Part shown: positions 48,250 through 64,000 of the stretch, in pieces
Position numbering within the stretch: the stretch's first letter is position 1
Layout: each line of letters begins with the position of its first letter
DNA from: Basidiobolus meristosporus CBS 931.73
Lineage: Eukaryota; Fungi; Basidiobolomycota
Assembly: GCA_002104905.1 (NCBI GenBank)
Contig: MCFE01000037.1
Span: 140,378 to 204,377, forward strand
Direction: 5' to 3'
Length of the DNA: 64,000 nt
Notes under the pieces: model-generated
The model's input: the letters and a program-made list of their open reading frames with translations, nothing else
Database searches by the model: none
Told to the model about the DNA's origin: nothing
Position numbers and translations under genes: made by a program

Positions 48250-48263
48250 GGGTTAGGGTTAGG
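48250..48263 (+). repeat. Short interstitial telomere-like repeat GGGTTAGGGTTAGG
   Basis: About two TTAGGG units in the same polarity as the telomere. Confidence 0.5.
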
Positions 48264-48987: not shown

Positions 48988-50379
48988 CTAATTGAAAGAA
49001 GCAATAACAGAGACCGAGTCGATATCCAGGATGCATTTTTTAGGGATTTGGACATTGCTCCAGCTGGGTTGCTTCTCCGACTGCTGAAAGCACTCGTAGA
49101 GTGGTCCTCCAATTTGTTCACCCTCCTTCAAAGGTGTACGGGTTTGCACTTCAACATGCAAATCATAATCTTTGCCATCACTGCTCTTGCCGTTATAGTA
49201 AAACAAGGTTGAGCCCGAACTCCAGGCAGCCTCATCCCACCAATACCCTTGATTTTGGTAAGCAGCCAAGAAGTCGTCAATGTATATGTCTACTGAGTCC
49301 CTAGTGCAGGCGCAGTTGCCGGTATTGTTGGCAAGTTTAAATTTAGAAAGCTCCGTGTCGTCACGGTGTACAGGAGAAAGAATATGCGACTTGGTCTTTG
49401 TGGTCTTCGTAACTTGAGGCCGGCGGTTTGTCACAGGGGCATCATACTCCAGATTAGATGAGCCTTTGCAGTAAGCATCGGTGGTGCCACAGTAGCCATA
49501 ATTGGAGCAGCAGTAACCTGGTTGGCACTGGTGCATCACATCTCCGAACCAGCCACAACGTGTATTGGTTTGATTTGCAACAACGATGTCTATTCCCAAT
49601 TTATCGGCATCGTAGGGATACCACTGCCATTGTATGGGCTTGTTGTTGTATCCATGATAGCCAGCTGGGCCGTTGATGGACATCCAAAGTGCCGTTTGAT
49701 CTTCTGTTAAACCTGCACCCCATGTGCCGTCGGGTCCAGGGTACGTGTACGTTATAGAGCCACCTAATGCGGGGAACCACTGGTTACCACCTTCATATCT
49801 GTAAACTTGTTTACTCCAAACGCCAACTCGGACGCCATTGCTAAGTCCCTGAGGATTTTCAAGGAACTGGTAGAAGTAGCCAAGACCATTTTTCAAGTTG
49901 TCGTTGATAACACGCAATTTCCCAAATTGCATCCATTTGTCATCAATACGTAGCTGGGCTGTGTAGATCAAATAATCACCGTCCTCTTCGTAATCGATTT
50001 GGAAGCCGTAATCCACTCCATCAAGCCATGGATAGAAATACTGCATATGGGACCCAGTGCCCTCGTGGCCAAAGCGACTAGTCACACATTCCTTACATGC
50101 TTCCAGTACGGTTGCTTTTCCATTGTTGTTGTCCCAGAGAGAGAAGAGGAATACGCGTTTGTTGGCCCATGTCTGCATCCCCATATATCCGTTATTCCAG
50201 CCGATAGCTGACCAGTAGGTTTGGTTAGGGCTGAATTCAGGAACAGATCGGACGTCTGTCCGAAAGGAGACGAACTTCTTCCCATTATCAGGGAGACTGG
50301 GGAAGTTGTGCATTGCCTGGGAGAGCACCTTCGCTGCGAACAGCGAGGTAAGCGAGAGGAAAAGGGTTGGAAGCTTCAT
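48988..50379 (-). CDS. Secreted modular protein: signal peptide + DUF3472-like domain + hevein/CBM18 chitin-binding module + unknown C-terminal domain
   Basis: Hydrophobic N-terminus. GYMGMQ..KRVFLFSLW, FGHEGTG..YPW and YQFLEN recall DUF3472. RCG...CQPGYCCSNYGYCGTTDAYC is a hevein motif. Intronless. Confidence 0.78.
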   Translation of the reverse strand: MKLPTLFLSLTSLFAAKVLSQAMHNFPSLPDNGKKFVSFRTDVRSVPEFSPNQTYWSAIGWNNGYMGMQTWANKRVFLFSLWDNNNGKATVLEACKECVTSRFGHEGTGSHMQYFYPWLDGVDYGFQIDYEEDGDYLIYTAQLRIDDKWMQFGKLRVINDNLKNGLGYFYQFLENPQGLSNGVRVGVWSKQVYRYEGGNQWFPALGGSITYTYPGPDGTWGAGLTEDQTALWMSINGPAGYHGYNNKPIQWQWYPYDADKLGIDIVVANQTNTRCGWFGDVMHQCQPGYCCSNYGYCGTTDAYCKGSSNLEYDAPVTNRRPQVTKTTKTKSHILSPVHRDDTELSKFKLANNTGNCACTRDSVDIYIDDFLAAYQNQGYWWDEAAWSSGSTLFYYNGKSSDGKDYDLHVEVQTRTPLKEGEQIGGPLYECFQQSEKQPSWSNVQIPKKCILDIDSVSVIASFN

Positions 50380-52252: not shown

Positions 52253-53340
52253 TAGGGTTAGGGAGGAGGGTGGCAATCACCATCAGGGAAAATCTTTATT
52301 TCAATAACTCAAAATCAAGAAGCCAAGTTCTACATAGGTGGTTTGTTTACCAGTGAATAAAGGGAAGGGGGAGATAGTCACCAACAGGTGAAATATTTAT
52401 TTCAGTTGAAGTAAAGAAGCCAGCACTACTGTTGTAGCTTTGATACTGTTGTAAGAGTCTTGGAGATATTGGAAGTGATTGGGAGAACAAGTAGATTATG
52501 TGGTTTTCACTTAATGATTTATTCAATGTAAAAGTAGTATTTATACTTTTACCTGGTCTTGGCATTACAAACACGTAGAATAGGTTAAGGAAGGTCCCAA
52601 GAGCATGTGTGCAAAGTTTGGGGCTGTTTGGACAACTTTAAGAATTTTCATATTCTGGGTACCTGGTATTTTGGTGAAAATATTCTAAGTAAATCCCAAG
52701 AAGGAATTTGGTCAGTATTCTATAGGATATGAAGGTAATGATCTAAGTGACTAAGTCAGGTGAATATTTAGGTGGAAATTCAAATCTCTACAACAGATAC
52801 AAGAGTGTGTAGCTGAGGGGAATCTGTTAGTAAGTTAATAAGGAGGTAAGATAGTTCTTCAGTGCTCAAGACACAGTTCAGTGGGAAGGGGGGTAGCAAG
52901 AGAGGTAAGAATGACTTGTGAACAACATTAATGAGGGGAATATGATAAGGATTGATATTCATCATAAAGGGAGTGTGCTACTTCAGATATTGCTGCCAAA
53001 GGTCTGTCAAGTACTTCAGGTGGGCCAGCTTGGGTTTTTCTGACTGCCAAATATAATAAGTAAACTTCTTGACTTCAGGATCTCCAAGTATAGTTCTCCA
53101 GCAGGAGCCAGGTGTAGTGTGTGTTGTATGAGTCTTAAAGATATTGGAAGTGAATTGGGAGGACAAGTAGAGTACATGGTTCTCACTTGATGATTTATAG
53201 AATGTAAAGTAGTATTTAAACTTTTACATGGTCTTGTAATAGCACACATGTAGAAAAGGTTTAGGAAGATCCCAAGAACAAGTGTGCAAAGTTTGGGGCT
53301 GTTTGGACAACTTTGAGAATTTTCACATGCTTGGTACAAA
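52253..53340 (-). mobile_element. Old, mosaic 3' fragments of telomeric non-LTR family 1
   Basis: Decayed 3'-end signatures at ~52253 and ~52361. 52780-53130 matches the family-1 C-terminus (MMNINPYHIPL, TTPGSCWRTILGDPE). A ~200-bp segment is shared between ~52450 and ~53130. Confidence 0.75.
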
Positions 53341-54965
53341 GGGTAGGGGAGGGAAAGTCACCAAGTTGGTGAAATCTTTATTTGAGTCAAGAACTAATCT
53401 AAGTACAAATAAAGAAGCCAATTAAGAGGTCTAGAACCTCTCTAATAAGTAGTCTAATTTATGTTTTGCTTCATCTCTAATGTTTCTTTCAATAAAGTAA
53501 AGCTCATCAGGGGTAAATATAAGATTCAAGGGTTTTGGGGGAAGTACAAATTGTAGATGTTTCTGATCATTATAATCCAAGACTGGAACCCAGCCTGGGA
53601 TTAGGTGTAGTAGGAAAGGTATGTGGACTTGTAAGTAGCTCTGCCACATAGATCTAAGATGGTCCTGAGCCAGTAGTCTTGGTTTCTCAGCTTTTTGAAG
53701 TTTTGAAGTAAGCTCTGTTACTACAGCAGAGCCAACCAGGGTGTGCCAGCAAGAAAATATCAGGGAGGAGTTAGATTTAAGCCATTGTTTGATGGAGGGG
53801 CTATGTGATTTCTGAAGTTTGACTAGGAAGGAAGCACGGAGATAGACCATTTGGATTTGGTATGAGTAGAACCCAAAGGCTCCATTAGTTGCATCAATAT
53901 AGAGAGATACTGGAAGATAAGGTACCAAGGATCTGATACACTGATGGAGAAATTTATCCAGGTGGTGAAGTTCTCTGGAGGTTAGGGGTATAATGTGGAG
54001 ACCAAATTCAAGTACCAGCAGTACATACTGCTTCAGAAGTATAGGGATCTTTTGAATTGGAGTCTCTGGAGTGACTACTACCAGAAGATTTTTAAGAGCC
54101 TGTTAGGCAAGACAGATCCTATAATTCAGGTGGAGCTTTGAGTCAATCCCATGTTGACAAAATGGCAGACCTAGATATATTGCTGTTTGTTGTGGCAGAA
54201 TGCTAGTGTTCTGTATAGTTGCAGTGCACCCAATTGGGACTGTCTTGGAAATTGAGAGTGAGAGTTTGTTGGCAGACAAGTACTTCCCAATGATGGCAGT
54301 GTCTGTTATGGGATTAGGAGTAGCAATCTTGATATCATCTGCATATAGAGTTAGTAGTGGATAGGGAGAGTCTGGTGAGGGGCCTTTTGGAGATAAAGGA
54401 AAGTCATGCAGAAATATCACAAATAGTAAGGGACCTAGTACAGATCCTTGGACTACACCATTTGGAACCTCATAAGTCTCTGATGTGCAACTTGGATGCA
54501 AAATTTTGGCTGAGCTCTCACAAAATAGAGAATGTACAAGAAGGATCATTTGTAGTGTGGTAACTGCTAATAGCTTTCTCCAAAGCAGGGCTCTGTCAAC
54601 AGAGTCAAAGGCTTTAGTAATGTCAAACAGAATGGTTGGCAATGAGAATTGAAGTGAATGATCATGGCTTAGCACTACAGCCATATCCAAGGAGAGTTTG
54701 GGCAAGAAGCCAAACTGAGAAGGATGGAATGGATATAGTTGAGATTGCAAGGATCTTGCTATTATAAGCTCAAAGATTTTCTGGCAGGTTGGTAGGAGTG
54801 AAACTGGACAGTAAGAACCTGGGAGTGAGTGTTTCCCCTTCCCTTTGTATAAGGGGATTACATTTGCCTGTGACCAGGCCTTTGGGGTAGTCAATTGTTG
54901 GGCACAGATAGAGAAGAATGGGAGAAGTAAGTGACTCATTTTGGAGTAGCACACCCAGAGTAGAT
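53341..54965 (-). mobile_element. Diverged family-1-like non-LTR element (subfamily 1b), 5'-truncated, RT remnant
   Basis: WSQANVIPLYKGKG, QFGF, FDITKAFDSV, GVVQGSVLGP, LYADDI and YLGLPF; decayed GGGTAGGGG 3' junction at 53341. Confidence 0.85.
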
Positions 54966-55108
54966 CAGGGTTAGGGGGGGAGACAGTCACCAACAGGTGA
55001 AATCTTTACTTCAGTTGAAACAAAGAAGCCAGCGCTACTGTTGTAGCTTTGATACAAGAGTGTGTAGCTGAGGGGTATTTGTAGGTAAGTTAATAAGAAG
55101 TGATGATA
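54966..55108 (-). mobile_element. Family-1 3' stub joined to GGGTTAGGGGGGG
   Basis: Carries the AGACAGTCACCAACAGGTGAAATC 3'-end motif. Confidence 0.88.
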
Positions 55109-55744
55109 GCTTGTAGGGTGTAGGTGTTAAAGTAAGGGCTAGGAAAAGGTTAGAAGAGCAGGGGGTCTGGGGGACACAGTCCCCTAGAGAATAAAAAAGC
55201 AGGGGGTTTGGGGGATGCAATCCCCCATACTGCTCCCATACTCTTTAAATTCCCTTTGGATTACTTTTCTCTTATTTTTGGTTCTGGTCCCTTAGGGTTT
55301 CAATTCCTCCTCCTAACCCTTATCACCCTAACCATGAATATTTTTACCCTACAACTGGCACATTGTCTGCTCTTATAGTGGGCATGTCTAGGCTGATATT
55401 TGTCTCCCTACACACTCTCCATGCTCTGTATAGGTCTTGATGATTATTTATTTAATAAAATGTTACTTTTGATGCTATAAATAATAATTTATGGGAATCA
55501 TCCCAATCTGGCCAGAATCTCATATTTTAATAAGCTTTGGGCACCATAAATTGCACGGCCCTAATATGATAAAAAAATTTATTGCCATTGCAAATTTTCT
55601 GTAACCTGATTGCTTTTACCAAATTTAAAGTGTATCCCAAGTTCAATACATTTTATAGCTATAATAGAAACTTCATTTGACACCATTGCAACTACTACAT
55701 GTGTTCCATGTGCACATGTATCCTGCGGGAATTGTAAAAACCTA

Positions 55745-56385
55745 GCGGTGCAGTACAAAAGTGCTTTTATTTTTCATCATGCTAGTTTTCATGAGTTCCT
55801 AACGCACTTCCAAAGTACACAGTAACCATACCCCAACAGGTTTTAAGGATGCCCACTGGCTATGCTTACTTGTGTCTAGCGGGAGCCATCAATCATCAGC
55901 CATGCGGTACTGAAATGCTTTTATTTTTCATCATGCTAGTTTTGCATGAATTCATAACGCACTTTTATAGTGCGCGGTAACCATACCCCAACAGGTTTTA
56001 ATGATACCCACTTGCTATGTTTACTTGTGTCTAGCAGGAGTCATCAATTATAAGCTGTGTGGTAATAAAGTGCTTTTATTCTTCATCATGCTAGTTTTAC
56101 ATGAGTCCCTAACACACTTTTATAGTGCATGGTTACTATACCCTAACAGGTTTTAATGATACCCATTTGCTACATTTACTTGTGTCTAGCAGGAGTCATC
56201 AATCATTAGCCGCACGGTAATAAAGTGCTTTTATTTTTCATCACAATAGTTTTATATGAGTCCCTAACACACTTTTATAGTGTGCGGTAACCATTCCCCA
56301 ACAGGTTTTAATGATACCTACTTGCTATGTTTACTTGAGTCTAGCAGGAGTCATCAATCATCAGCCACGCAGTAATAAAATGCTT
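55745..56385. repeat. Subtelomeric tandem repeat, ~155-bp unit x ~4.1
   Basis: RTGCTT(TTATT) anchors at 55761, 55915, 56070, 56225 and 56380. Confidence 0.92.
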
Positions 56386-56443
56386 AGACTACTTTGGGGA
56401 ACGGTTCTAAGCAAACATTAAGCACTGCTTATGGTGATACAGA

Positions 56444-56469
56444 GGGTTAGGGGGGGTTAGGGTTAGGGG
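56444..56469 (+). repeat. Telomeric repeat tract at the 3' junction of the family-2 LINE
   Basis: gggttaggggggttagggttagggg (approximate G-run lengths). Confidence 0.9.
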
Positions 56470-59400
56470 TCTAAATTCTTTTATTGAATCTGATCAAGTA
56501 TAGTAATACTATTTCAACCTGATTCAAGTTGAAAAGTGCATATTGTATAAAGAAGATATATCTATAGTAATGTGAAGGTAAAATACTGCTCAAGTTGAGT
56601 TGAGTTCTGAAAAGAAATTTGTTGACAAATCAGGCTAGAAAATGAAGTAAAGCTGGGAGTTATTTGAAAGCTAAGCACTAAGGGAAAGTGTAGAGCTATA
56701 CTACCACTTCCTGAAAGGCAGGGATCTCACAGGAAGGCAGAAGCTCAGGTCTAATTGCAGATATGATAGCAGAAAGTCTCTGGATGAGCTCCCTTTGTTT
56801 GTGAAATTGGAACAAAGATTGGGTATTGTTGAACCCAAAGCAGCTCTCTACATGAGAGAAGTAAAAATACCTGCTACAGTAGGGGCACTTGGAACCCAAG
56901 CAAAGTGTGTTCATTCTCCACCTTATGGCCTGGAAGGCAAAGAAGGAGCTCCTGATGTAAAGGGATATGTCTGCTCCACTATGGGAATGTCTACTCTCAT
57001 GAGAAATAAGTCCAACTCTGTCTCTTGAGCTAGTAACTCTGGAGATATTAGACTTGTTCCGTTGGATAGTGCCACATTGAGCCATGAGTGCCAAATAATG
57101 CCATAGTGTGCCAGGGAGGCCAATTGAGCCTCTACCTGGCCACAGAGTGTGAAAGATAGCTCCGCATCTTCATGCAAAGCAGCCCCTGTGTTTCACCCAT
57201 TGTGTTGGAGAAAATCCATTTTTTGACCTTTTTTTGTTGATCAATGTAGCTCAGGATGTGTTAGAGCACAAGCAGATTGAAGATATGCATCTGGTACTCA
57301 ATACCCAGGGCACTCTGAATCTAGCTCCTGTAGCTTGTATCATGTCACAAAAATGAATGGCACTATCTTGGTCCACTGGTACTATCTGGCACTATAAGTG
57401 CTTTGTATAGATCTTACTTTAGGGCTAATATTTAAATATAGTGCCAGATAGTACCAGTGGACCAAGATAGTGCCATTCATTTTTGTGACATGATACAAGC
57501 TACAGGAGCTAGATTCAGAGTGCCATGGGTATTGAGTACCAGATGCATATCTTCAGTTCTCCTGTGCTCTTACACATCCTGAGCTACATTGATCCACAAA
57601 AAAAGGTCAAAAAATAGATTTTCTCCTGCGCAATGGGTGAAACACAGGGGCTGCTTTACATGAAGATGCAGAGCTATGTTTCACACTCTGTGGCCAAGTA
57701 TAGGCTCACTTGACCTCTTGGGCACACTATGGCATCATTTGGCACTCATGGCTCAATGTGGCACTATCCAATGGAACAAGTCTATTCTCCAGCTTCCTTT
57801 GATGCATTGATACAGAGAGAGGAATATGCTCTCCAGGTGGCTTGGCACTGTTGGAGGCCAAATACTCTCTATAACCAGCAGGAAAGTGTATCTTCTTTCT
57901 CACCAATGACTTTGGGGTGGCTTGGACTAAGTTGTTAGTAATCTTATTGACTAAGATCTTCAAAGGATTATTGGATGATGCTTTTGCATAGTGCTGCCCA
58001 AATCTGATACCCAAAGTCTCAAATCTGATTGGCACAGCCTCAATACCAGTCAGACTATGTATAAGCCTCTGATATTGCCTAGAATGGTAGTCAGAAGCAT
58101 TGACTACCCAGCCAATAGCTTCTTGCTGCAGAGCTTGTAGCTTGGTGATGAGGTCAGGATCAGCAGCCAAACACATCATAGGAGCAGCATACTCCCAAGA
58201 TGACCTCACAAAGGCCTTGAATAGCTGTAGCCTAATCAGAGGATGCCATCTGGCCCCTTTGAGCTGTAGGAATCTCAAAGTGGCAGAAGCCCTTTGAATA
58301 CACTTTTCAGTGTAAGCTGCCCAAGAAATACCACTTTGACAAGTTGGGAGTCCAAGGTAGCTGTAAGAGGAAGGTTGAGGCAGAAGGGAGTTATTGAAGG
58401 AAATATTCCACTCTGGTGTGGGACTAATGTATGCTGATTTAGCAGTGTTTACCTCCATACCATTGGCAGTACACCATTGGCTGACTTTACTCAGCAAACA
58501 ATTAGCTTCTGAGAGACTCCTAGGCAGCAATTGGATGTCATCAGCAAATAACAGTGCAGAGGGCACAGCAGCTCCTGAGTCATTGAAGCAGAGACTTTGG
58601 GCCAGGTCATCAATGTAGACATTGAACAGGATTGGTGAAAGCAAAGATCCCTGGAATAGCCCCCTGAGCCTGGGAAATGGAGATGATATCACACCATTAA
58701 CACTAATGGTGGAATAGCAGGCTGAGAAGAGTGAGTGTACAATCCTAAGAAGCTGACTGGATACATTCTGGTTCTTTAGTCTCTTCAGGAGTATTGGGAT
58801 CACTACCCTATCATATGCTTGCTTCAGGTCAATAAAGATTCGGTGTTTTCTTTCTTCATGACCTGATAGGTAAAAAGCATCATGAGATACAACTGAATGT
58901 GTTACAGTAGAGTAGCCACCCCTAAAGCCAGCTTGTGCAGGATGAAGCTGGGCCAAGGGGGAGTCCTTCAAGTGGTTGAGGAGGCAGGCCTCAAATATTC
59001 TTCTAAGCATTGGTGTCAAGGCAATAGGCCGGAAGTTGTCAATGGTTGAGGAAGTGGACTTCTTTGGCAAAGGGTGAATGTGAGAGAGATTCCACTGTGA
59101 AGGGGTAAACCCTAGCTTGAGGCAATGATGAAAGAAAATCTTCAAATCATCTATGAAAGCTGCATTTCTAGCCAAAACCTTGAGAATGCATATATGAAGA
59201 GGGTCCAGACCAGCAGACTTGGAAGAGGGATACTTGCTGATTGCAAGAAGAAGAGACTTGGCAGTGAACCATTGACTATCAGAGAGGGTGTCTTGCATGA
59301 AAGTCCCAAATGCTGGAACCCAGCCATCTTTAAGGCAATGAGCAGGTGGGTATGCAAATACTTCTTGAAAGTACTTGTATGCATCATCCACAGCAGAGAT

Positions 59401-60390
59401 ACCAGGATCTCTGGAACTGATTATTACTTCTGCCTGAGTTACCCTTTGAGCTTGCCTGAATATCACAGCAGCCTGCTGGGCAGCTGAGGCAGAGTGAAGT
59501 CTCCAAAGGGGGTCACTTCTCCTAGGACCAGATTTGGCAGCATGAACTGAGTAAGTTCCCAGGTACTCCTCACATATGACCAATACCAGGGAGTGGAAAG
59601 CAGTATAGGCAGCATCAATAGCAGCAGAGATGGTTCCTATAGGAGAACAGGATGTAAGCTCTTCTAGATGTCTCCAGGCAGTTTGCAGTATAGGAGACTC
59701 CAAAGAGTAATGGCTGCTAATGAGTGACTGAACCATAGGCTTCTCTAGTGGCTGAAGATGCAGCTTGATTGAGTCAGAAGAAGAGAAATTCTGGGTGTTA
59801 GAGGAAGAGTAGGCCATTGACACCACAGCAGCCATAAGTATATGGTCAGACTGGCCACATATAACATCAGACTGGAAGTACCAATGAGCCATTGTGTTAT
59901 ATCTGACAAAAGCATGATCAGGAGTGCTTCCCAGTGGGATGGGGGGGAGGTGCTCCATACCAAGTCTTAGAAGAAGACTCTCAAATAAGCCTATTCTACT
60001 CCTTGGTCCAACCTTCTTGGAGCCAAAGAGTTTACCAAAGTGAGTGTTGATATCACCAAAGAGCAGAGTGGGAGGCCGAGTGGGCAGGAATGAGGCAATA
60101 TCCTGACAGGACATTGAGGGAGGGAAGTAGACAGTCATTAGGCTGACTGACATCAGAGTTACACATATTGCATTTTCAGTGCAGGAGACCATGGATATCA
60201 TTGGCCTCAGATGTGGTGATACTAGACAGATCAGTCCAGCCTTCTCATGACCAGTTATGATTGGGTTAGGGACAATCCTGTTAGGGCCAATCCTGTTGGA
60301 GGTGGCTGGGAAGTATGAGTGTGATGAGTGCAGAGCTTGATCAACAAACCAAGTTTCAGCCAGGAAAATTATGTCATATCTATTATCTTT
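56470..60390 (-). mobile_element. Non-LTR retrotransposon family 2 (APE endonuclease + RT + C-terminal Cys/His knuckle), 5'-truncated within APE, interrupted by a foldback element
   Basis: DIIFLAETW, GDINTH, DHAF and SDH (APE). FRPIAL, QAGFR, FIDLKQAYD, GLFQGSLLSP, LFADDI and YLGL (RT). CPYC..H...C near the C-terminus. AATAAA near the 3' end. Confidence 0.92.
57051..57782. mobile_element. 732-bp foldback/MITE with ~346-bp inverted arms, 40-bp loop and TA target duplication
   Basis: TA|GACTTGTTCC...GGAACAAGTC|TA; arms 57051-57396 and 57437-57782. Removing it plus one TA restores the LINE frame (HQRKLENNISRVTSSRD). Confidence 0.88.
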
Positions 60391-60402
60391 GGGTTAGGGG
60401 GG

Positions 60403-62638
60403 AGACAGTCACCAACAGGTGAAATCTTTATTTCAGTTGAAACAAAGAAGCCAGCGCAACTGTTGTAGCTTTGATACAAGAGTGTGTAGCTGAGTGGAAT
60501 TTGTAGGTAAGTTAATAAGAAGTGATGATAGTTCTTCAGTGCTCAAGACACTGTTCAGTGGGAAGGGGGGTAGCAAGAGAGGTAAGAATGACTTGTGAAC
60601 AACATTAATGAGGGGAATGTGATAAGGATTGATATTCATCATAAAGGGTGTGTGCTGCTGCAGATATTGCTGCCAAAGGTCTGTCAAGTACTTCAGGTAG
60701 GCTAGCTTGGGTTTTTCTGACTGCAGAATATAGTGTGCAAACTTCTTGACTTCAGGATCTCCAAGTATAGTTCTCCAGCAAGAGCCAGGTGTTGTGTGGT
60801 GTGTTCTCTTCCAGGCCTTAATCAGTGGGTTGTTGCCGTTGTGAAGTCTGAGGTATAATCTGGTTCTAAGGTAGAGAAGTCTGATCTTATAGGGCATAAA
60901 CCCAAAAGCACCAAGAATAGCATGTCTGTAGGGGCATTCAGGCAAATGAGGCACCAAGGAGGTAATGCACCATACTGCAAACTTGTCAAGCTTAGTGCAG
61001 TCTCTAGAAGTAAGAGAGAGAAGTGGTAAGCCAAATTCCAGGACAGGGAAGACAAACTGCTTGAGTAGAAGGAGGCAGCTGGGAGCTGAAGTTGTAGGAG
61101 GAGTAACAGCCAGTAGCTTGTGGAGTGCCTGTCTTGCCAGGATAATTCTCTTCTTCAGGTGTGCTCCAGAGTCTAGTCCAGTAGGAAGGAAAGGAAAGCC
61201 AAGATATGTAGCAGAAACCTGAGCAGGTAGAGTGGAGTTCTCCAAGTTGATGGGAGAGCCCAAAGGTACTGTCTTTGCAATGGAAAGCTGGAGATTATTC
61301 TTCTGCAGATACTGGTGAATGGTCTGGGAGTTGTGTTGCACATTGGAGGAGGATATTCTGATGTCATCAGCAAAGAGGGTAACCAGGCAGTCAGCTGAGA
61401 GTCTTGGGAAATCATTCAGGAAGATGGCAAACAATATAGGACCAAGCACAGAGCCTTGAACCACTCCATTAGGAACTGAGAACACAGCTGATTGCTCACT
61501 TGGGTGCAGAATTCTTGCTTGTGGATCCAGAAACAGAGACCTGACAAGGAGGGTGAGAGAGGTACTGGAGAAGCATTGCAACTTGGACCAAAGCAGATTT
61601 CTGTCAACTGAATCAAAGGCCTTAGTAATATCAAACAGAACAGAGGGATACTTGCACTGGAGAGAGTGATCTTGGCTAAGTATGACTGCATATTCCAAGG
61701 AGAGGCCAGCAACAAAGCCAAACTGTTCAGGATGAAACTTGAGGGAGTCAGAGTAGAGCTCCTGAGCAAGCAGAAGCTCAAACAACTTTCTGCAGGTGGG
61801 CAGCAGAGATATTGGCCTGTAGGAGCTAGGATCCAGGCGCTTTCCTTTACCCTTGTACAGTGGCAGAACATTTGCAAAGGACCATTCCTCAGGAGTAGAA
61901 AGCTGGGTTGAGCATTGCTGAAACAGTGGAAGCAGAAGTGCAGACATGGCCTTGGTACTAGTCTTCAGAAGCTCATAGGAGATTGTGTCCACACCTGGAG
62001 CAGTAGAGTTGGGAAGCCTCTTGAGCACATTATGGATTCTCCCTTGATCAAGTGCAAGTGGGATGGGCAGAGTCTTGAAGTCAGGATGAAAGCCAGGAGT
62101 TGAGTACTGCTTTGTAGAGAAGAAGATGTTAGCCAGCTGTTCTGTTGAAGGTAACTTCCTGGAAGAGGGCCTCATTGCCCTGTAGAGTCTTGACACTGTT
62201 CTTGTTATAGAGTTGGAAGATTGCAGAGGCAAGGAACTCATAATGAGTATGCAGAGTGTGGTGAATTGCCTTGGAGTGGTGTATTGCTGTCAGGAGGAGC
62301 TTCTCTGTTTTTGGGTTAGGGAAACTCAGGTAGCTTTGTTGCAGGGCAGAAACAATGGATTCCCATTTTCTTGAGGTAACAGCAGTAGTCTTGCATGGCA
62401 GTGAGAGGGAGGCAGACACCAGAATCAGATGCTTCACAAAGAGCCAGGCATAGTTGAGATCATCTGGCAGAGAATGTAGCAAACTGGCAAGCTTCAAGTG
62501 GTTCCCAAAGTCTTTCTTCTGATTCTTGGTAGCTTTGTGGGTGAGCACAGTAAGTTTTGGCAGCTTCTTCTTCACAACTGGTTGCATAGAAAGGGACCAG
62601 GCTGGGTGGTCAGAGGCTCTCAAGGATTCTAGCTCAGC
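60403..62638 (-). mobile_element. Non-LTR retrotransposon family 1, longest copy (2.2 kb, RT ORF 60433-62241), 5'-truncated and telomere-capped
   Basis: APGVD, YRPISLL, QFGF, FDITKAFD, GVVQGSVLGP, LFADDI and YLGFP. 3' end follows GGGTTAGGGGGG (60391); the 5' end is followed by TTAGGG repeats (62639). Confidence 0.93.
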
Positions 62639-62670
62639 TTAGGGTTAGGGTTAGGGGAGGGTTAGGGGGG

Positions 62671-62949
62671 AGACAGTCACCAACAGGTGAAATCTTTATT
62701 TCAGTTGAAACAAAGAAGCCAGCGCTACTGTTGTAGCTTTGATACAAGAGTGTGTAGCTGAGGGGAATTTGTAGGTAAGTTAATAAGAAGTGATGATAGT
62801 TCTTCAGTGCTCAAGACACTGTTCAGTGGGAAGGGGGGTAGCAAGAGAGGTAAGAATGACTTGTGAACAACATTAATGAGGGGAATGTGATAAGGATTGA
62901 TATTCATCATAAAGGGAGTGTGCTGCTGCAGATATTGCTGCCAAAGGTC
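62671..62949 (-). mobile_element. Family-1 3' fragment (~280 bp)
   Basis: Near-identical to the 3' end of 60403-62638; flanked by TTAGGG-type junctions. Confidence 0.93.
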
Positions 62950-62956
62950 TTAGGGG

Positions 62957-63647
62957 AGACAGTCACCAACAGGTGAAATCTTTATTTCAGTTGAAACAAA
63001 GAAGCCAGCGCTACTGTTGTAGCTTTGATACAAGAGTGTGTAGCTGAGGGGAATTTGTAGGTAAGTTAATAAGAAGTGATGATAGTTCTTCAGTGCTCAA
63101 GACACTGTTCAGTGGGAAGGGGGGTAGCAAGAGAGGTAAGAATGACTTGTGAACAACATTAATGAGGGGAATGTGATAAGGATTGATATTCATCATAAAG
63201 GGAGTGTGCTGCTGCAGATATTGCTGCCAAAGGTCTGTCAAGTACTTCAGGTAGGCCAGCTTGGGTTTTTCTGACTGCAGAATAAATTCTGCAAACTTCT
63301 TGACTTCAGGATCTCCAAGTATAGTTCTCCAGCAGGAGCCAGTTGTTGTGTGGTGTGTTCTCTTCCAGGCCTTAATCAGTGGGTTGTTGCAGTGGTGAAG
63401 TCTGAGACATAATCTGGTTCTAAGGTAGAGAAGTCTGATCTTATAGGGCATAAACCCAAAAGCACCAAGAATAGCATGTCTGTAGGGGCATTCAGGCAAA
63501 TGAGGCACCAAGGAGGTAATGCACCATACTGCAAACTTGTCAAGCTTAGTGCAGTCTCTAGAAGTAAGAGAGAGAAGTGGTAAGCCAAATTCCAGTACAG
63601 GGAAGACAAACTGCTTGAGTAGAAGAAGGCAGCTGGGAGCTGAAGTT
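62957..63647 (-). mobile_element. Family-1 3' fragment (~690 bp)
   Basis: Same 3' end; truncated and capped by GGGTTAGGGGGGG. Confidence 0.93.
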
Positions 63648-63832: not shown

Positions 63833-64000
63833 TTAGGGTTAGGGTTAGGGTTAGGGTTAGGGTTAGGGTTAGGGTTAGGGTTAGGGTTAGGGTTAGGGTT
63901 AGGGTTAGGGTTAGGGTTAGGGTTAGGGTTAGGGTTAGGGTTAGGGTTAGGGTTAGGGTTAGGGTTAGGGTTAGGGTTAGGGTTAGGGTTAGGGTTAGGG
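63833..64000 (+). repeat. Telomere (TTAGGG)28 running to the window end
   Basis: Perfect TTAGGG array. Confidence 0.99.

Follow-up and report, generated by a model that had tools for sequence, protein, structure and literature searches.

The APE-bearing telomeric retrotransposons known so far come from insects, with one further entry from an anole lizard, while the known fungal cases carry another nuclease or none. TRAS and SART, found in silkworm and other insects and belonging to the R1 clade, are LINEs of telomeric repeats that encode APE and reverse transcriptase (RT) domains and exist beside telomerase-type repeats. Tx1-1_ACar (anole) and Zepp (Chlorella), which are L1-group or LINE-like, are listed as telomere-associated (PMC10088271). 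That endonuclease-deficient Penelope-like telomeric elements occur in fungi too is mentioned in PMC10088271, where Gladyshev & Arkhipova 2007 is cited.

We analyzed a 64,000-nt stretch of Basidiobolus meristosporus CBS 931.73 DNA (the window) that ends in 28 perfect TTAGGG units (63833-64000), and hence at a chromosome end. A first-pass annotation had proposed that, next to a stack of LINEs referred to as family 1, the window contains a second, APE-encoding LINE family (family 2) anchored to telomeric sequence by the same rule, and that such an element would be unusual for a fungus. The literature searched bears out the latter point: we found in it no description of APE-type telomeric LINEs in fungi, the fungal telomeric retroelements known there being only REL-type (MoTeR, FoTeR and Cnl1) or endonuclease-less and Penelope-like (PMC12857005, PMC10088271).

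Results

A dead copy of an APE-type LINE next to a chromosome end

The window contains one family-2 copy, on the minus strand, 3.4 kb from the (TTAGGG)28 chromosome end. Its parts and neighbors are given below; P0001 is an intact 994-aa relative.

56444..56469, minus strand: telomere-like tail, 26 nt, at the 3' end of the family-2 copy; C4, C3, C7 and C3 runs with TAA between them
56470..56695, minus strand: family-2 3' UTR of 226 nt; its AATAAA (56480-56485) is separated from the tail by 10 nt
56696..57049, minus strand: C-terminal part of ORF2 with stop codon; zinc knuckle CX2CX7HX3C; 63% identity to P0001 residues 883-992
57050..57783, no strand assigned: inserted foldback, a MITE-like palindrome with arms of ~353 nt, 93% complementary, and a 40-nt loop
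57784..60390, minus strand: main part of ORF2, starting at about residue 28; 61% identity to P0001 residues 28-888
~59842-60381, minus strand: APE of the family-2 copy, followed by a helical linker and then RT
~58348-59067, minus strand: RT of the family-2 copy (Pfam RVT_1)
60391..60402, minus strand: block GGGTTAGGGGGG where the truncated 5' side of family 2 meets the next element; interpreted as a family-1 tail
60403..62641, minus strand: neighboring family-1 LINE, RT only, 5'-truncated, the first of four stacked family-1 copies up to the telomere
63833..64000, plus strand: terminal array (TTAGGG)28, joined directly to a 172-nt family-1 stump

Read on the minus strand, the 3' end of the copy consists of AATAAA, a 10-nt spacer (56470-56479) and the 26-nt CCCTAA-like tail, with no A-run after the AATAAA; the arrangement that had been annotated is thus confirmed at 56444-56485. 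The tail adjoins non-coding DNA with a 155-bp satellite present four times. At the 5' side the body ends at ~60390, where alignment starts at residue 28 of P0001, so that the truncation does lie inside APE, as had been noted. The copy lacks ORF1, the start of ORF2 (~27 residues) and the first catalytic Asn of APE, and a YDIIFLAETW motif stands immediately after the truncation point. The block GGGTTAGGGGGG at 60391-60402 leads directly into the next family-1 element at its 3' end.

A near-perfect foldback of 734 bp (57050-57783, z = -39), overlooked in the first-pass annotation, interrupts ORF2, with the RT-proximal part on one side and the CCHC part on the other, and shifts the frame. It is flanked on both sides by a 3-bp repeat, AAT (minus strand). 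The foldback apart, the 2.96-kb ORF2 is free of stops and frameshifts. The family-2 copy is dead, being the 5'-truncated and foldback-split remnant of an autonomous L1-like LINE. In this state it cannot supply the TTAGGG-nicking endonuclease that had been envisaged, and nicking of TTAGGG by a family-2 APE is pure conjecture.

Family 2 belongs to an L1-like lineage

Family-2 ORF2 is laid out as APE, RT and a C-terminal CCHC knuckle, beyond which it continues for only ~50 aa; this C-terminal segment gave no Pfam match. The RT is recognized by Pfam as RVT_1 (E = 3e-30), and its nearest solved chain is human L1 ORF2p (3e-23; R2, 8e-13). By Pfam the APE of this copy is weak (Exo_endo_phos, 0.0014), but the N-terminal family profile matches human L1 endonuclease over the full domain (2e-8). 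TRAS1 EN and R1Bm EN were absent at E <= 10 from the same profile search, in which L1 EN was listed. In an alignment of 14 family sequences, the APE residues N, E, Y, D, N, D, D and H are invariant or nearly so. An AF2 model (pLDDT 77.6) matches L1 ORF2p (3e-14), L1 EN (TM 0.69) and TRAS1 EN (TM 0.68), and an ESM Atlas search returned generic APE+RT clusters only. Judged by the nearest solved chains, the fold and the tree of database hits, the family-2 lineage is an APE-type LINE and L1-like. Given the RVT_1 and L1 EN matches and an RT only 27% identical to that of family 1, the annotation was right to treat family 2 as a separate, APE-encoding element. A family-1 copy has an SDH motif at its 5' end that was considered as a last APE motif; this reading found no support in hhalign against the family profile (E = 0.22).

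In six related loci (L001, L003-L006 and L008), ORF2 is preceded by ORF1, which is 315-556 aa long where complete and gave only coiled-coil hints in a Pfam search. The full form, as predicted from these sequences, is ORF1 plus an ORF2 of ~1000 aa with APE, RT and CCHC knuckle.

A telomere-repeat tail is conserved across distant relatives

The combination AATAAA-spacer-CCTAACCC tail is common to relatives from other samples and metagenomes that share only 25-61% identity; it is present in the six loci with ORF1 and in L011-L013, L015, L017, L019, L020, L026, L027 and L072. Conservation of a telomere tail over such distances, and on one strand only, is what is new here. In the window and the related loci together, the sense strand has 21 instances of the tail motif and the antisense strand has none. 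The medians across the 21 tails are 11 nt for the spacer, 13 nt for the tail and 24 nt from AATAAA to the tail end (range 13-38). Most tails begin in the same register, CCTAACCC..., though the tail may belong to the RNA, and none of the 21 3' ends is followed by poly(A) or another A-run. Chance is excluded: in shuffled sequence the expected count of the 12-mer CCCTAACCCTAA is 0, and the tails are distributed 21 to 0 between the strands. The polarity and the telomere-repeat tail in place of poly(A) that the annotation had ascribed to both families are hence borne out, and are kept in relatives down to ~25-30% identity.

Only one family-2 copy was examined in the B. meristosporus genome, which speaks for the alternative of an ordinary dispersed L1-like LINE placed in a subtelomere by chance, its telomere-like bases being leftover target sequence. 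We regard this alternative as highly improbable: relatives at 25-61% identity from other samples carry the same AATAAA-spacer-tail, always in sense and never in antisense, and poly(A) is nowhere present.

All tail-bearing relatives fall in a single clade of the ORF2 tree of database hits (SH-aLRT 97), and family 1 is sister to the clade of family 2 and all tail-bearing relatives (SH-aLRT 99, on a long branch). Because of this sister position, the tail rule looks inherited, and families 1 and 2 do not appear to be independent inventions. Taken at the level of sequence, the presence of the same tail in distant relatives suggests a whole lineage of nuclease-carrying jumping genes specialized for chromosome ends. 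Against so wide a reading, the window provides a single family-2 copy, and no CCCTAA tail was seen in a Smittium relative (38% identity), whose true 3' end could not be fixed. One further B. meristosporus contig (L090, reached via a paralogous gene) contained no LINE ORF.

Elements are stacked head to tail with their 3' ends toward the centromere

Many tail-bearing elements stand in one-way head-to-tail stacks with 7-28 nt between members; such stacks are also present in L003, L004, L011, L012 and L015. Orientation is uniform, with the 3' end toward the centromere, and all members keep the 3' end and lack the 5' part, with no nested halves. In L003 and L004 there are, in addition, 3' stumps of 30-45 nt, each with its own tail. 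In the window, the distal three family-1 copies show no difference over 172 nt, the one inward of them has two changes, and the innermost is far more diverged and its tails have decayed.

According to the first-pass annotation, the truncated family-2 copy is "capped by GGGTTAGGG". This is doubtful. Of the four further family-1 3' ends in the window, three have a tail of the same form as the 12-nt block at 60391-60402: it measures 12-13 nt and stands each time after arbitrary bases (ttt, tca, gtt), in a register other than that expected of telomerase alignment. The GGGTTAGGG cap is for these reasons more likely the next element's own tail, copied from family-1 RNA. The shared 12-13-nt form after unrelated bases, together with the imperfection of the tails (C4-C7 runs) compared with a terminal array of 28 perfect units, argues for an RNA-borne tail.

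Could the stacks have been built by recombination, that is, by break-induced replication, D-loop extension or slippage at short telomere seeds, with the tails serving as the homology used and with little fresh retrotransposition? Growth of arrays in this manner is documented for MoTeR (PMC7367193), and the region 62667-63236 consists of a 286-bp period repeated twice with 100% identity. However, the repeat junction in that region contains an extra TTA foreign to the element, the members of a stack come from different families and were truncated at different points, the ORF2 of the family-2 copy has no stops, and in many organisms divergent elements with intact ORFs keep the tail at their ends. 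We therefore consider recombination an improbable origin of the stacks, though less so than the chance placement of an ordinary LINE.

Discussion

Proposed addition to chromosome ends and the role of APE

We think it probable that the family-2 copy derives from an autonomous L1-like LINE of a deep clade specialized for chromosome ends, in which a G-strand 3'-OH primes on a C-strand tail of the element RNA. The transcript would be cut ~24 nt past the conserved AAUAAA, leaving 1-4 CCCUAA-like units at the 3' end of the RNA. Where a chromosome end is short or uncapped, its G-strand 3'-OH would pair with this tail, or just abut it, and prime reverse transcription, so that the element would be added to the end with its own 5' end outermost. 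The exposed 5' end would then be lost by erosion or incomplete copying until capped by the next element or by telomerase. Addition at ends is suggested by the retention of 3' ends and loss of 5' ends, by the gradient from proximal-old to distal-young copies and by the TTAGGG array that sits directly on a truncated stump.

The main gap in this mechanism is the role of the conserved APE, which may be a source of the G-strand 3'-OH but is no more than a candidate for it. In a TRAS-like manner, APE could nick the G-strand in telomeric duplex or in resident tails, the nicked strand would serve as primer on the C-strand tail of the RNA, and stacks would grow by intercalation and not at the tip. Orientation in insect TRAS is the same as in family 2, the predicted fold is equally near TRAS1 endonuclease and L1 EN, and the APE catalytic residues are invariant despite up to 75% sequence divergence in the clade. 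An endonuclease has been lost from telomeric elements like Athena and GilM/T, and an invariant active site argues that nicking is needed, against simple addition at ends. The identical 12 nt GGGTTAGGGGGG on both sides of the family-2 copy (56444-56455 and 60391-60402) may likewise be a target-site duplication, left by an APE-made insertion into a family-1 tail. This evidence is ambiguous, because an unrelated relative has a tail of the same pattern, two units and then a C6 run.

Several observations fit nicking less well. The family-1 copy that lies at 62958 lacks a corresponding duplication. In the stretch from APE to RT, Pfam gave no match and no Myb-like domain for telomere binding was seen; the linker is helical, and the model matches L1 ORF2p. 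The proximal-old to distal-young gradient better suits growth at the tip. Finally, all 21 junctions are without a long telomere tract at their side, although the terminal array has at least 28 units. The last point could be explained by survivorship: in Magnaporthe, interstitial telomere tracts of at least three units break and only short ones survive (PMC7367193). Short inter-element tracts, for this reason, do not amount to proof of addition to bare ends. On balance we lean toward addition at ends over nicking by APE inside telomeric DNA, which we hold to be possible but doubtful.

A further reading can be put forward tentatively. The clade, deep and widespread, might have swapped poly(A) for a telomere C-strand measured from the poly(A) signal, its RNA acting as a one-shot telomerase template that heals short or bare ends, and APE serving separate, internal insertion. 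If true, early-diverging fungi would have a second, retrotransposon-based system of end maintenance beside telomerase.

Telomere-specialized retrotransposons bear on the kinship of telomerase with mobile elements and on the survival of chromosome ends after damage. An L1-like, APE-bearing clade with the telomere repeat as its tail, seen in many environmental samples, would represent a third solution. B. meristosporus, a culturable fungus with a PacBio assembly, offers a tractable system in which to ask whether a LINE needs its nuclease at the ends of chromosomes, and whether the poly(A) signal determines the tail.

Comparison with known telomeric elements

Among fungal elements, MoTeR, FoTeR and Cnl1 have their 5' end outermost and short telomere tracts between stacked copies, as here (PMC7367193, PMC12857005). 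They carry a C-terminal REL (restriction-like, PD-(D/E)XK) endonuclease and group with CRE/SLACS, whereas family 2 has an N-terminal APE and no REL domain. In Athena and Coprina, which are endonuclease-deficient and Penelope-like, the 3' ends bear the telomere-repeat complement and are thought to pair with the G-overhang, which resembles family 2; their RT is of a different class and they lack an endonuclease, while family 2 is an L1-like LINE whose lineage conserves APE. Tx1-1_ACar and Zepp, hosted by a vertebrate and a green alga, are set apart from family 2 here by description rather than by sequence; Zepp has poly(A).

HeT-A, TART and TAHRE of Drosophila form, like family 2, one-way head-to-tail terminal arrays with 3' ends centromere-ward and eroded 5' ends; TART and TAHRE keep APE even though they are added to ends. 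Drosophila, however, has no telomerase repeats, and its elements have poly(A) and belong to the Jockey clade, whereas here (TTAGGG)28 caps the stack. TRAS shares its polarity with family 2 and has a similar APE fold (TRAS1 EN, TM 0.68). TRAS and SART have poly(A) tails and are members of the R1 clade, for which the family-2 APE profile shows no affinity, matching L1 EN and not TRAS1 or R1Bm EN; family 2, in contrast, combines a telomere-repeat tail with a fungal host.

Structure of the family-2 copy

The window lies at a chromosome end, closed by 28 TTAGGG units, all of them perfect (63833-64000). The exact product of its ORF 48988-50379 groups with proteins labeled Basidiobolus meristosporus CBS 931.73, and a paralog is present on a contig of GCA_002104905.1, which identifies the source as this early-diverging fungus. 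Its single copy of family 2, a LINE, runs on the minus strand from ~60390 down to 56470. The 3' end, read directly at 56444-56485, is as the first-pass annotation described it: AATAAA (56480-56485), 10 nt, and a 26-nt imperfect C-strand telomere tail (56444-56469), with no A-run in this interval. Translation from 60393 gave an open frame of 888 codons, matching RVT_1 at 3e-30 and Exo_endo_phos weakly. Alignment with P0001, an intact 994-aa relative (61% identity), is interrupted by a foldback:

60387-57784, minus strand: aligned to P0001 residues 28-888
57783-57050: foldback between the two ORF2 pieces
57064-56735, minus strand, different frame from the first piece: aligned to P0001 residues 883-992

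Since the alignment begins only at residue 28, the copy is indeed 5'-truncated, as had been claimed; ORF1 is missing, along with the start of ORF2 and its first catalytic Asn. The foldback, present once in the window, is a near-perfect, MITE-like 734-bp structure (arm complementarity 93%; folding z-score -39) with termini AGACTTGTTCC and its complement. It is flanked by AAT on either side, a repeat readable as 3 bp (AAT) or 2 bp (TA). By codon arithmetic, deleting the foldback with one AAT restores the ORF2 frame; it is a later insertion that splits ORF2. The foldback apart, ORF2 is free of stops and frameshifts, so the copy is young.

A telomere-like tail marks a whole clade

The main new result is that the tail rule is clade-wide. 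AATAAA, a spacer, and then CCTAACCCTAA... were found at element ends in contigs encoding relatives with 30-61% identity (L001, L003, L004, L005, L006, and L008), and a metagenome scan detected the same form in L011, L012, L013, L015, L017, L019, and L020. The tail follows longer 3' UTRs in L026, L027, and L072, is variant in form in L014 and L016, and is replaced by TCCTA alone in L018. Across the window and related loci, we counted 21 tails in sense orientation and 0 in antisense. In the ORF2 tree, every tail-bearing relative falls in one clade (SH-aLRT 97), to which the window's other LINE family, family 1, is sister on a long branch (SH-aLRT 99). From this placement, the two families look to share the tail habit by descent. 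The earlier claim that family 2 obeys the family-1 rule is borne out. An exception is a Smittium member nested within the clade, in which no CCCTAA tail was seen. Nor is stacking confined to the window: 3' stumps of 30-45 nt, each with its own tail, occur in L003 and L004, and L011, L012, and L015 contain several tails each, all on one strand.

Median lengths are 11 nt for the spacer, 13 nt for the tail, and 24 nt (range 13-38) from AATAAA to tail end. The last fits the 10-30 nt where cleavage after a poly(A) signal usually occurs, suggesting that the family RNA would end in 1-4 C-strand units. Family-1 junctions at 54968, 60391, and 63648 place a constant GGGTTAGGGGGG(G) between unrelated preceding bases (tca, ttt, gtt) and the 3' UTR, and tails are imperfect, whereas the terminal TTAGGG array is perfect. 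We therefore argue that the tail probably has an RNA template and is not a remnant of telomerase product. The telomere-like "cap" proposed at 60391-60402 is more likely the own tail of the adjoining family-1 element, given the identical junction form after unrelated bases.

A lone GGGTTAGGGTTAGG lies at 48250-48263, 15.6 kb from the end and just downstream of a chitin-binding gene, with no AATAAA-type element end beside it.

Growth of the stack

All members of the stack retain the 3' end without the 5' part, and none is split into nested halves. Over 172 nt, no differences separate the three distal family-1 copies, and the next one inward has two changes, while the inner stack (52.2-55.1 kb) is far more divergent, with decayed tails; the terminal TTAGGG array is joined directly to a 172-nt stump. 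This combination of unnested, 3'-complete members, a distal-young gradient, and an array on a stump favors addition at chromosome ends, toward which we lean slightly. Nicking of telomeric or tail repeats by the APE appears less likely to us. Three points count against tip addition: the APE active site is conserved; the identical 12 nt on either side of the family-2 copy could be a target-site duplication, but these flanks are ambiguous, an unrelated tail in L003 having that pattern too; and short inter-element tracts may reflect survivorship, as shown in MoTeR arrays (PMC7367193).

At 62667-63236, a 286-bp period is present in two copies (100% identity), made up of a 280-nt family-1 3' stump and a 7-nt TTAGGGG junction, after which comes a longer copy identical to it. 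Either one source gave rise to two very recent additions, or the segment was duplicated locally. At 54981-56443, a family-1-type 3' end (last 142 nt 94-99% identical to other copies; signal altered to AGTAAA) is fused to a non-coding segment of 1.3 kb that includes a 155-bp satellite repeated four times (55758-56385). The family-2 tail adjoins its outer end, and the unit may be a non-autonomous partner. The older inner stack (52255-54980) has at least three more 3' ends, whose tails have decayed (GGGTTAGGGAGGAGGGTGG, GGGAAGGGGG, and GGGTAGGGGAGGG), and contains a third RT family (53500-54966) 49% identical to family 1.

The ORF2 protein and known telomeric retroelements

An APE profile built from the first 300 residues of each of 14 family proteins matched the complete domain of human L1 endonuclease (2e-8), and the catalytic residues (N, E, Y, D, N, D, D, and H) align with it in columns invariant or nearly so among the 14. 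P0001 residues 1-440, modeled with AlphaFold (pLDDT 77.6), matched full-length human L1 ORF2p at 3e-14, with TM scores of 0.69 to L1 EN, 0.68 to TRAS1 EN, and 0.62 to R1Bm EN. Profile, catalytic residues, and predicted fold thus agree with the proposal that family 2 encodes an APE. The closest match of the RT is also human L1 ORF2p (3e-23), a CX2CX7HX3C knuckle is present at the ORF2 C terminus, and ORF1 lies directly upstream of ORF2 in intact relatives. Judged by nearest solved proteins and structures only, family 2 is L1-like.

The coding region itself holds telomere-like 9-mers on the sense strand (window 60263-60297; L001 953-961, 2641-2649, and 2795-2803, three observed in L001 versus ~0.015 expected). 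In the window copy and the 61% relative, an APE surface loop of Pro-Asn repeats is encoded by CCTAACCC-type DNA, enlarged in the window copy via a 15-bp tandem duplication.

A 2023 list of telomeric retroelements names TRAS/SART, GilM/T, Zepp, MoTeR1, Tx1-1_ACar, and Athena (PMC10088271). For fungi, our literature search for telomere-specific LINEs returned MoTeR, FoTeR, and Cnl1 only, and nothing on Basidiobolus or Zoopagomycota. Arrays of tandem repeats, each repeat 190-200 bp long, adjoin element ends in some relatives (L004 4850-5500; L007 3900-4440) and are reminiscent of the variable 5' repeats in MoTeR and FoTeR. All three of these fungal LINEs, Cnl1 included, encode a REL nuclease and cluster with CRE/SLACS (PMC12857005, PMC7367193), whereas in family 2 no REL domain was found at the ORF2 C terminus and the nuclease is an N-terminal APE.
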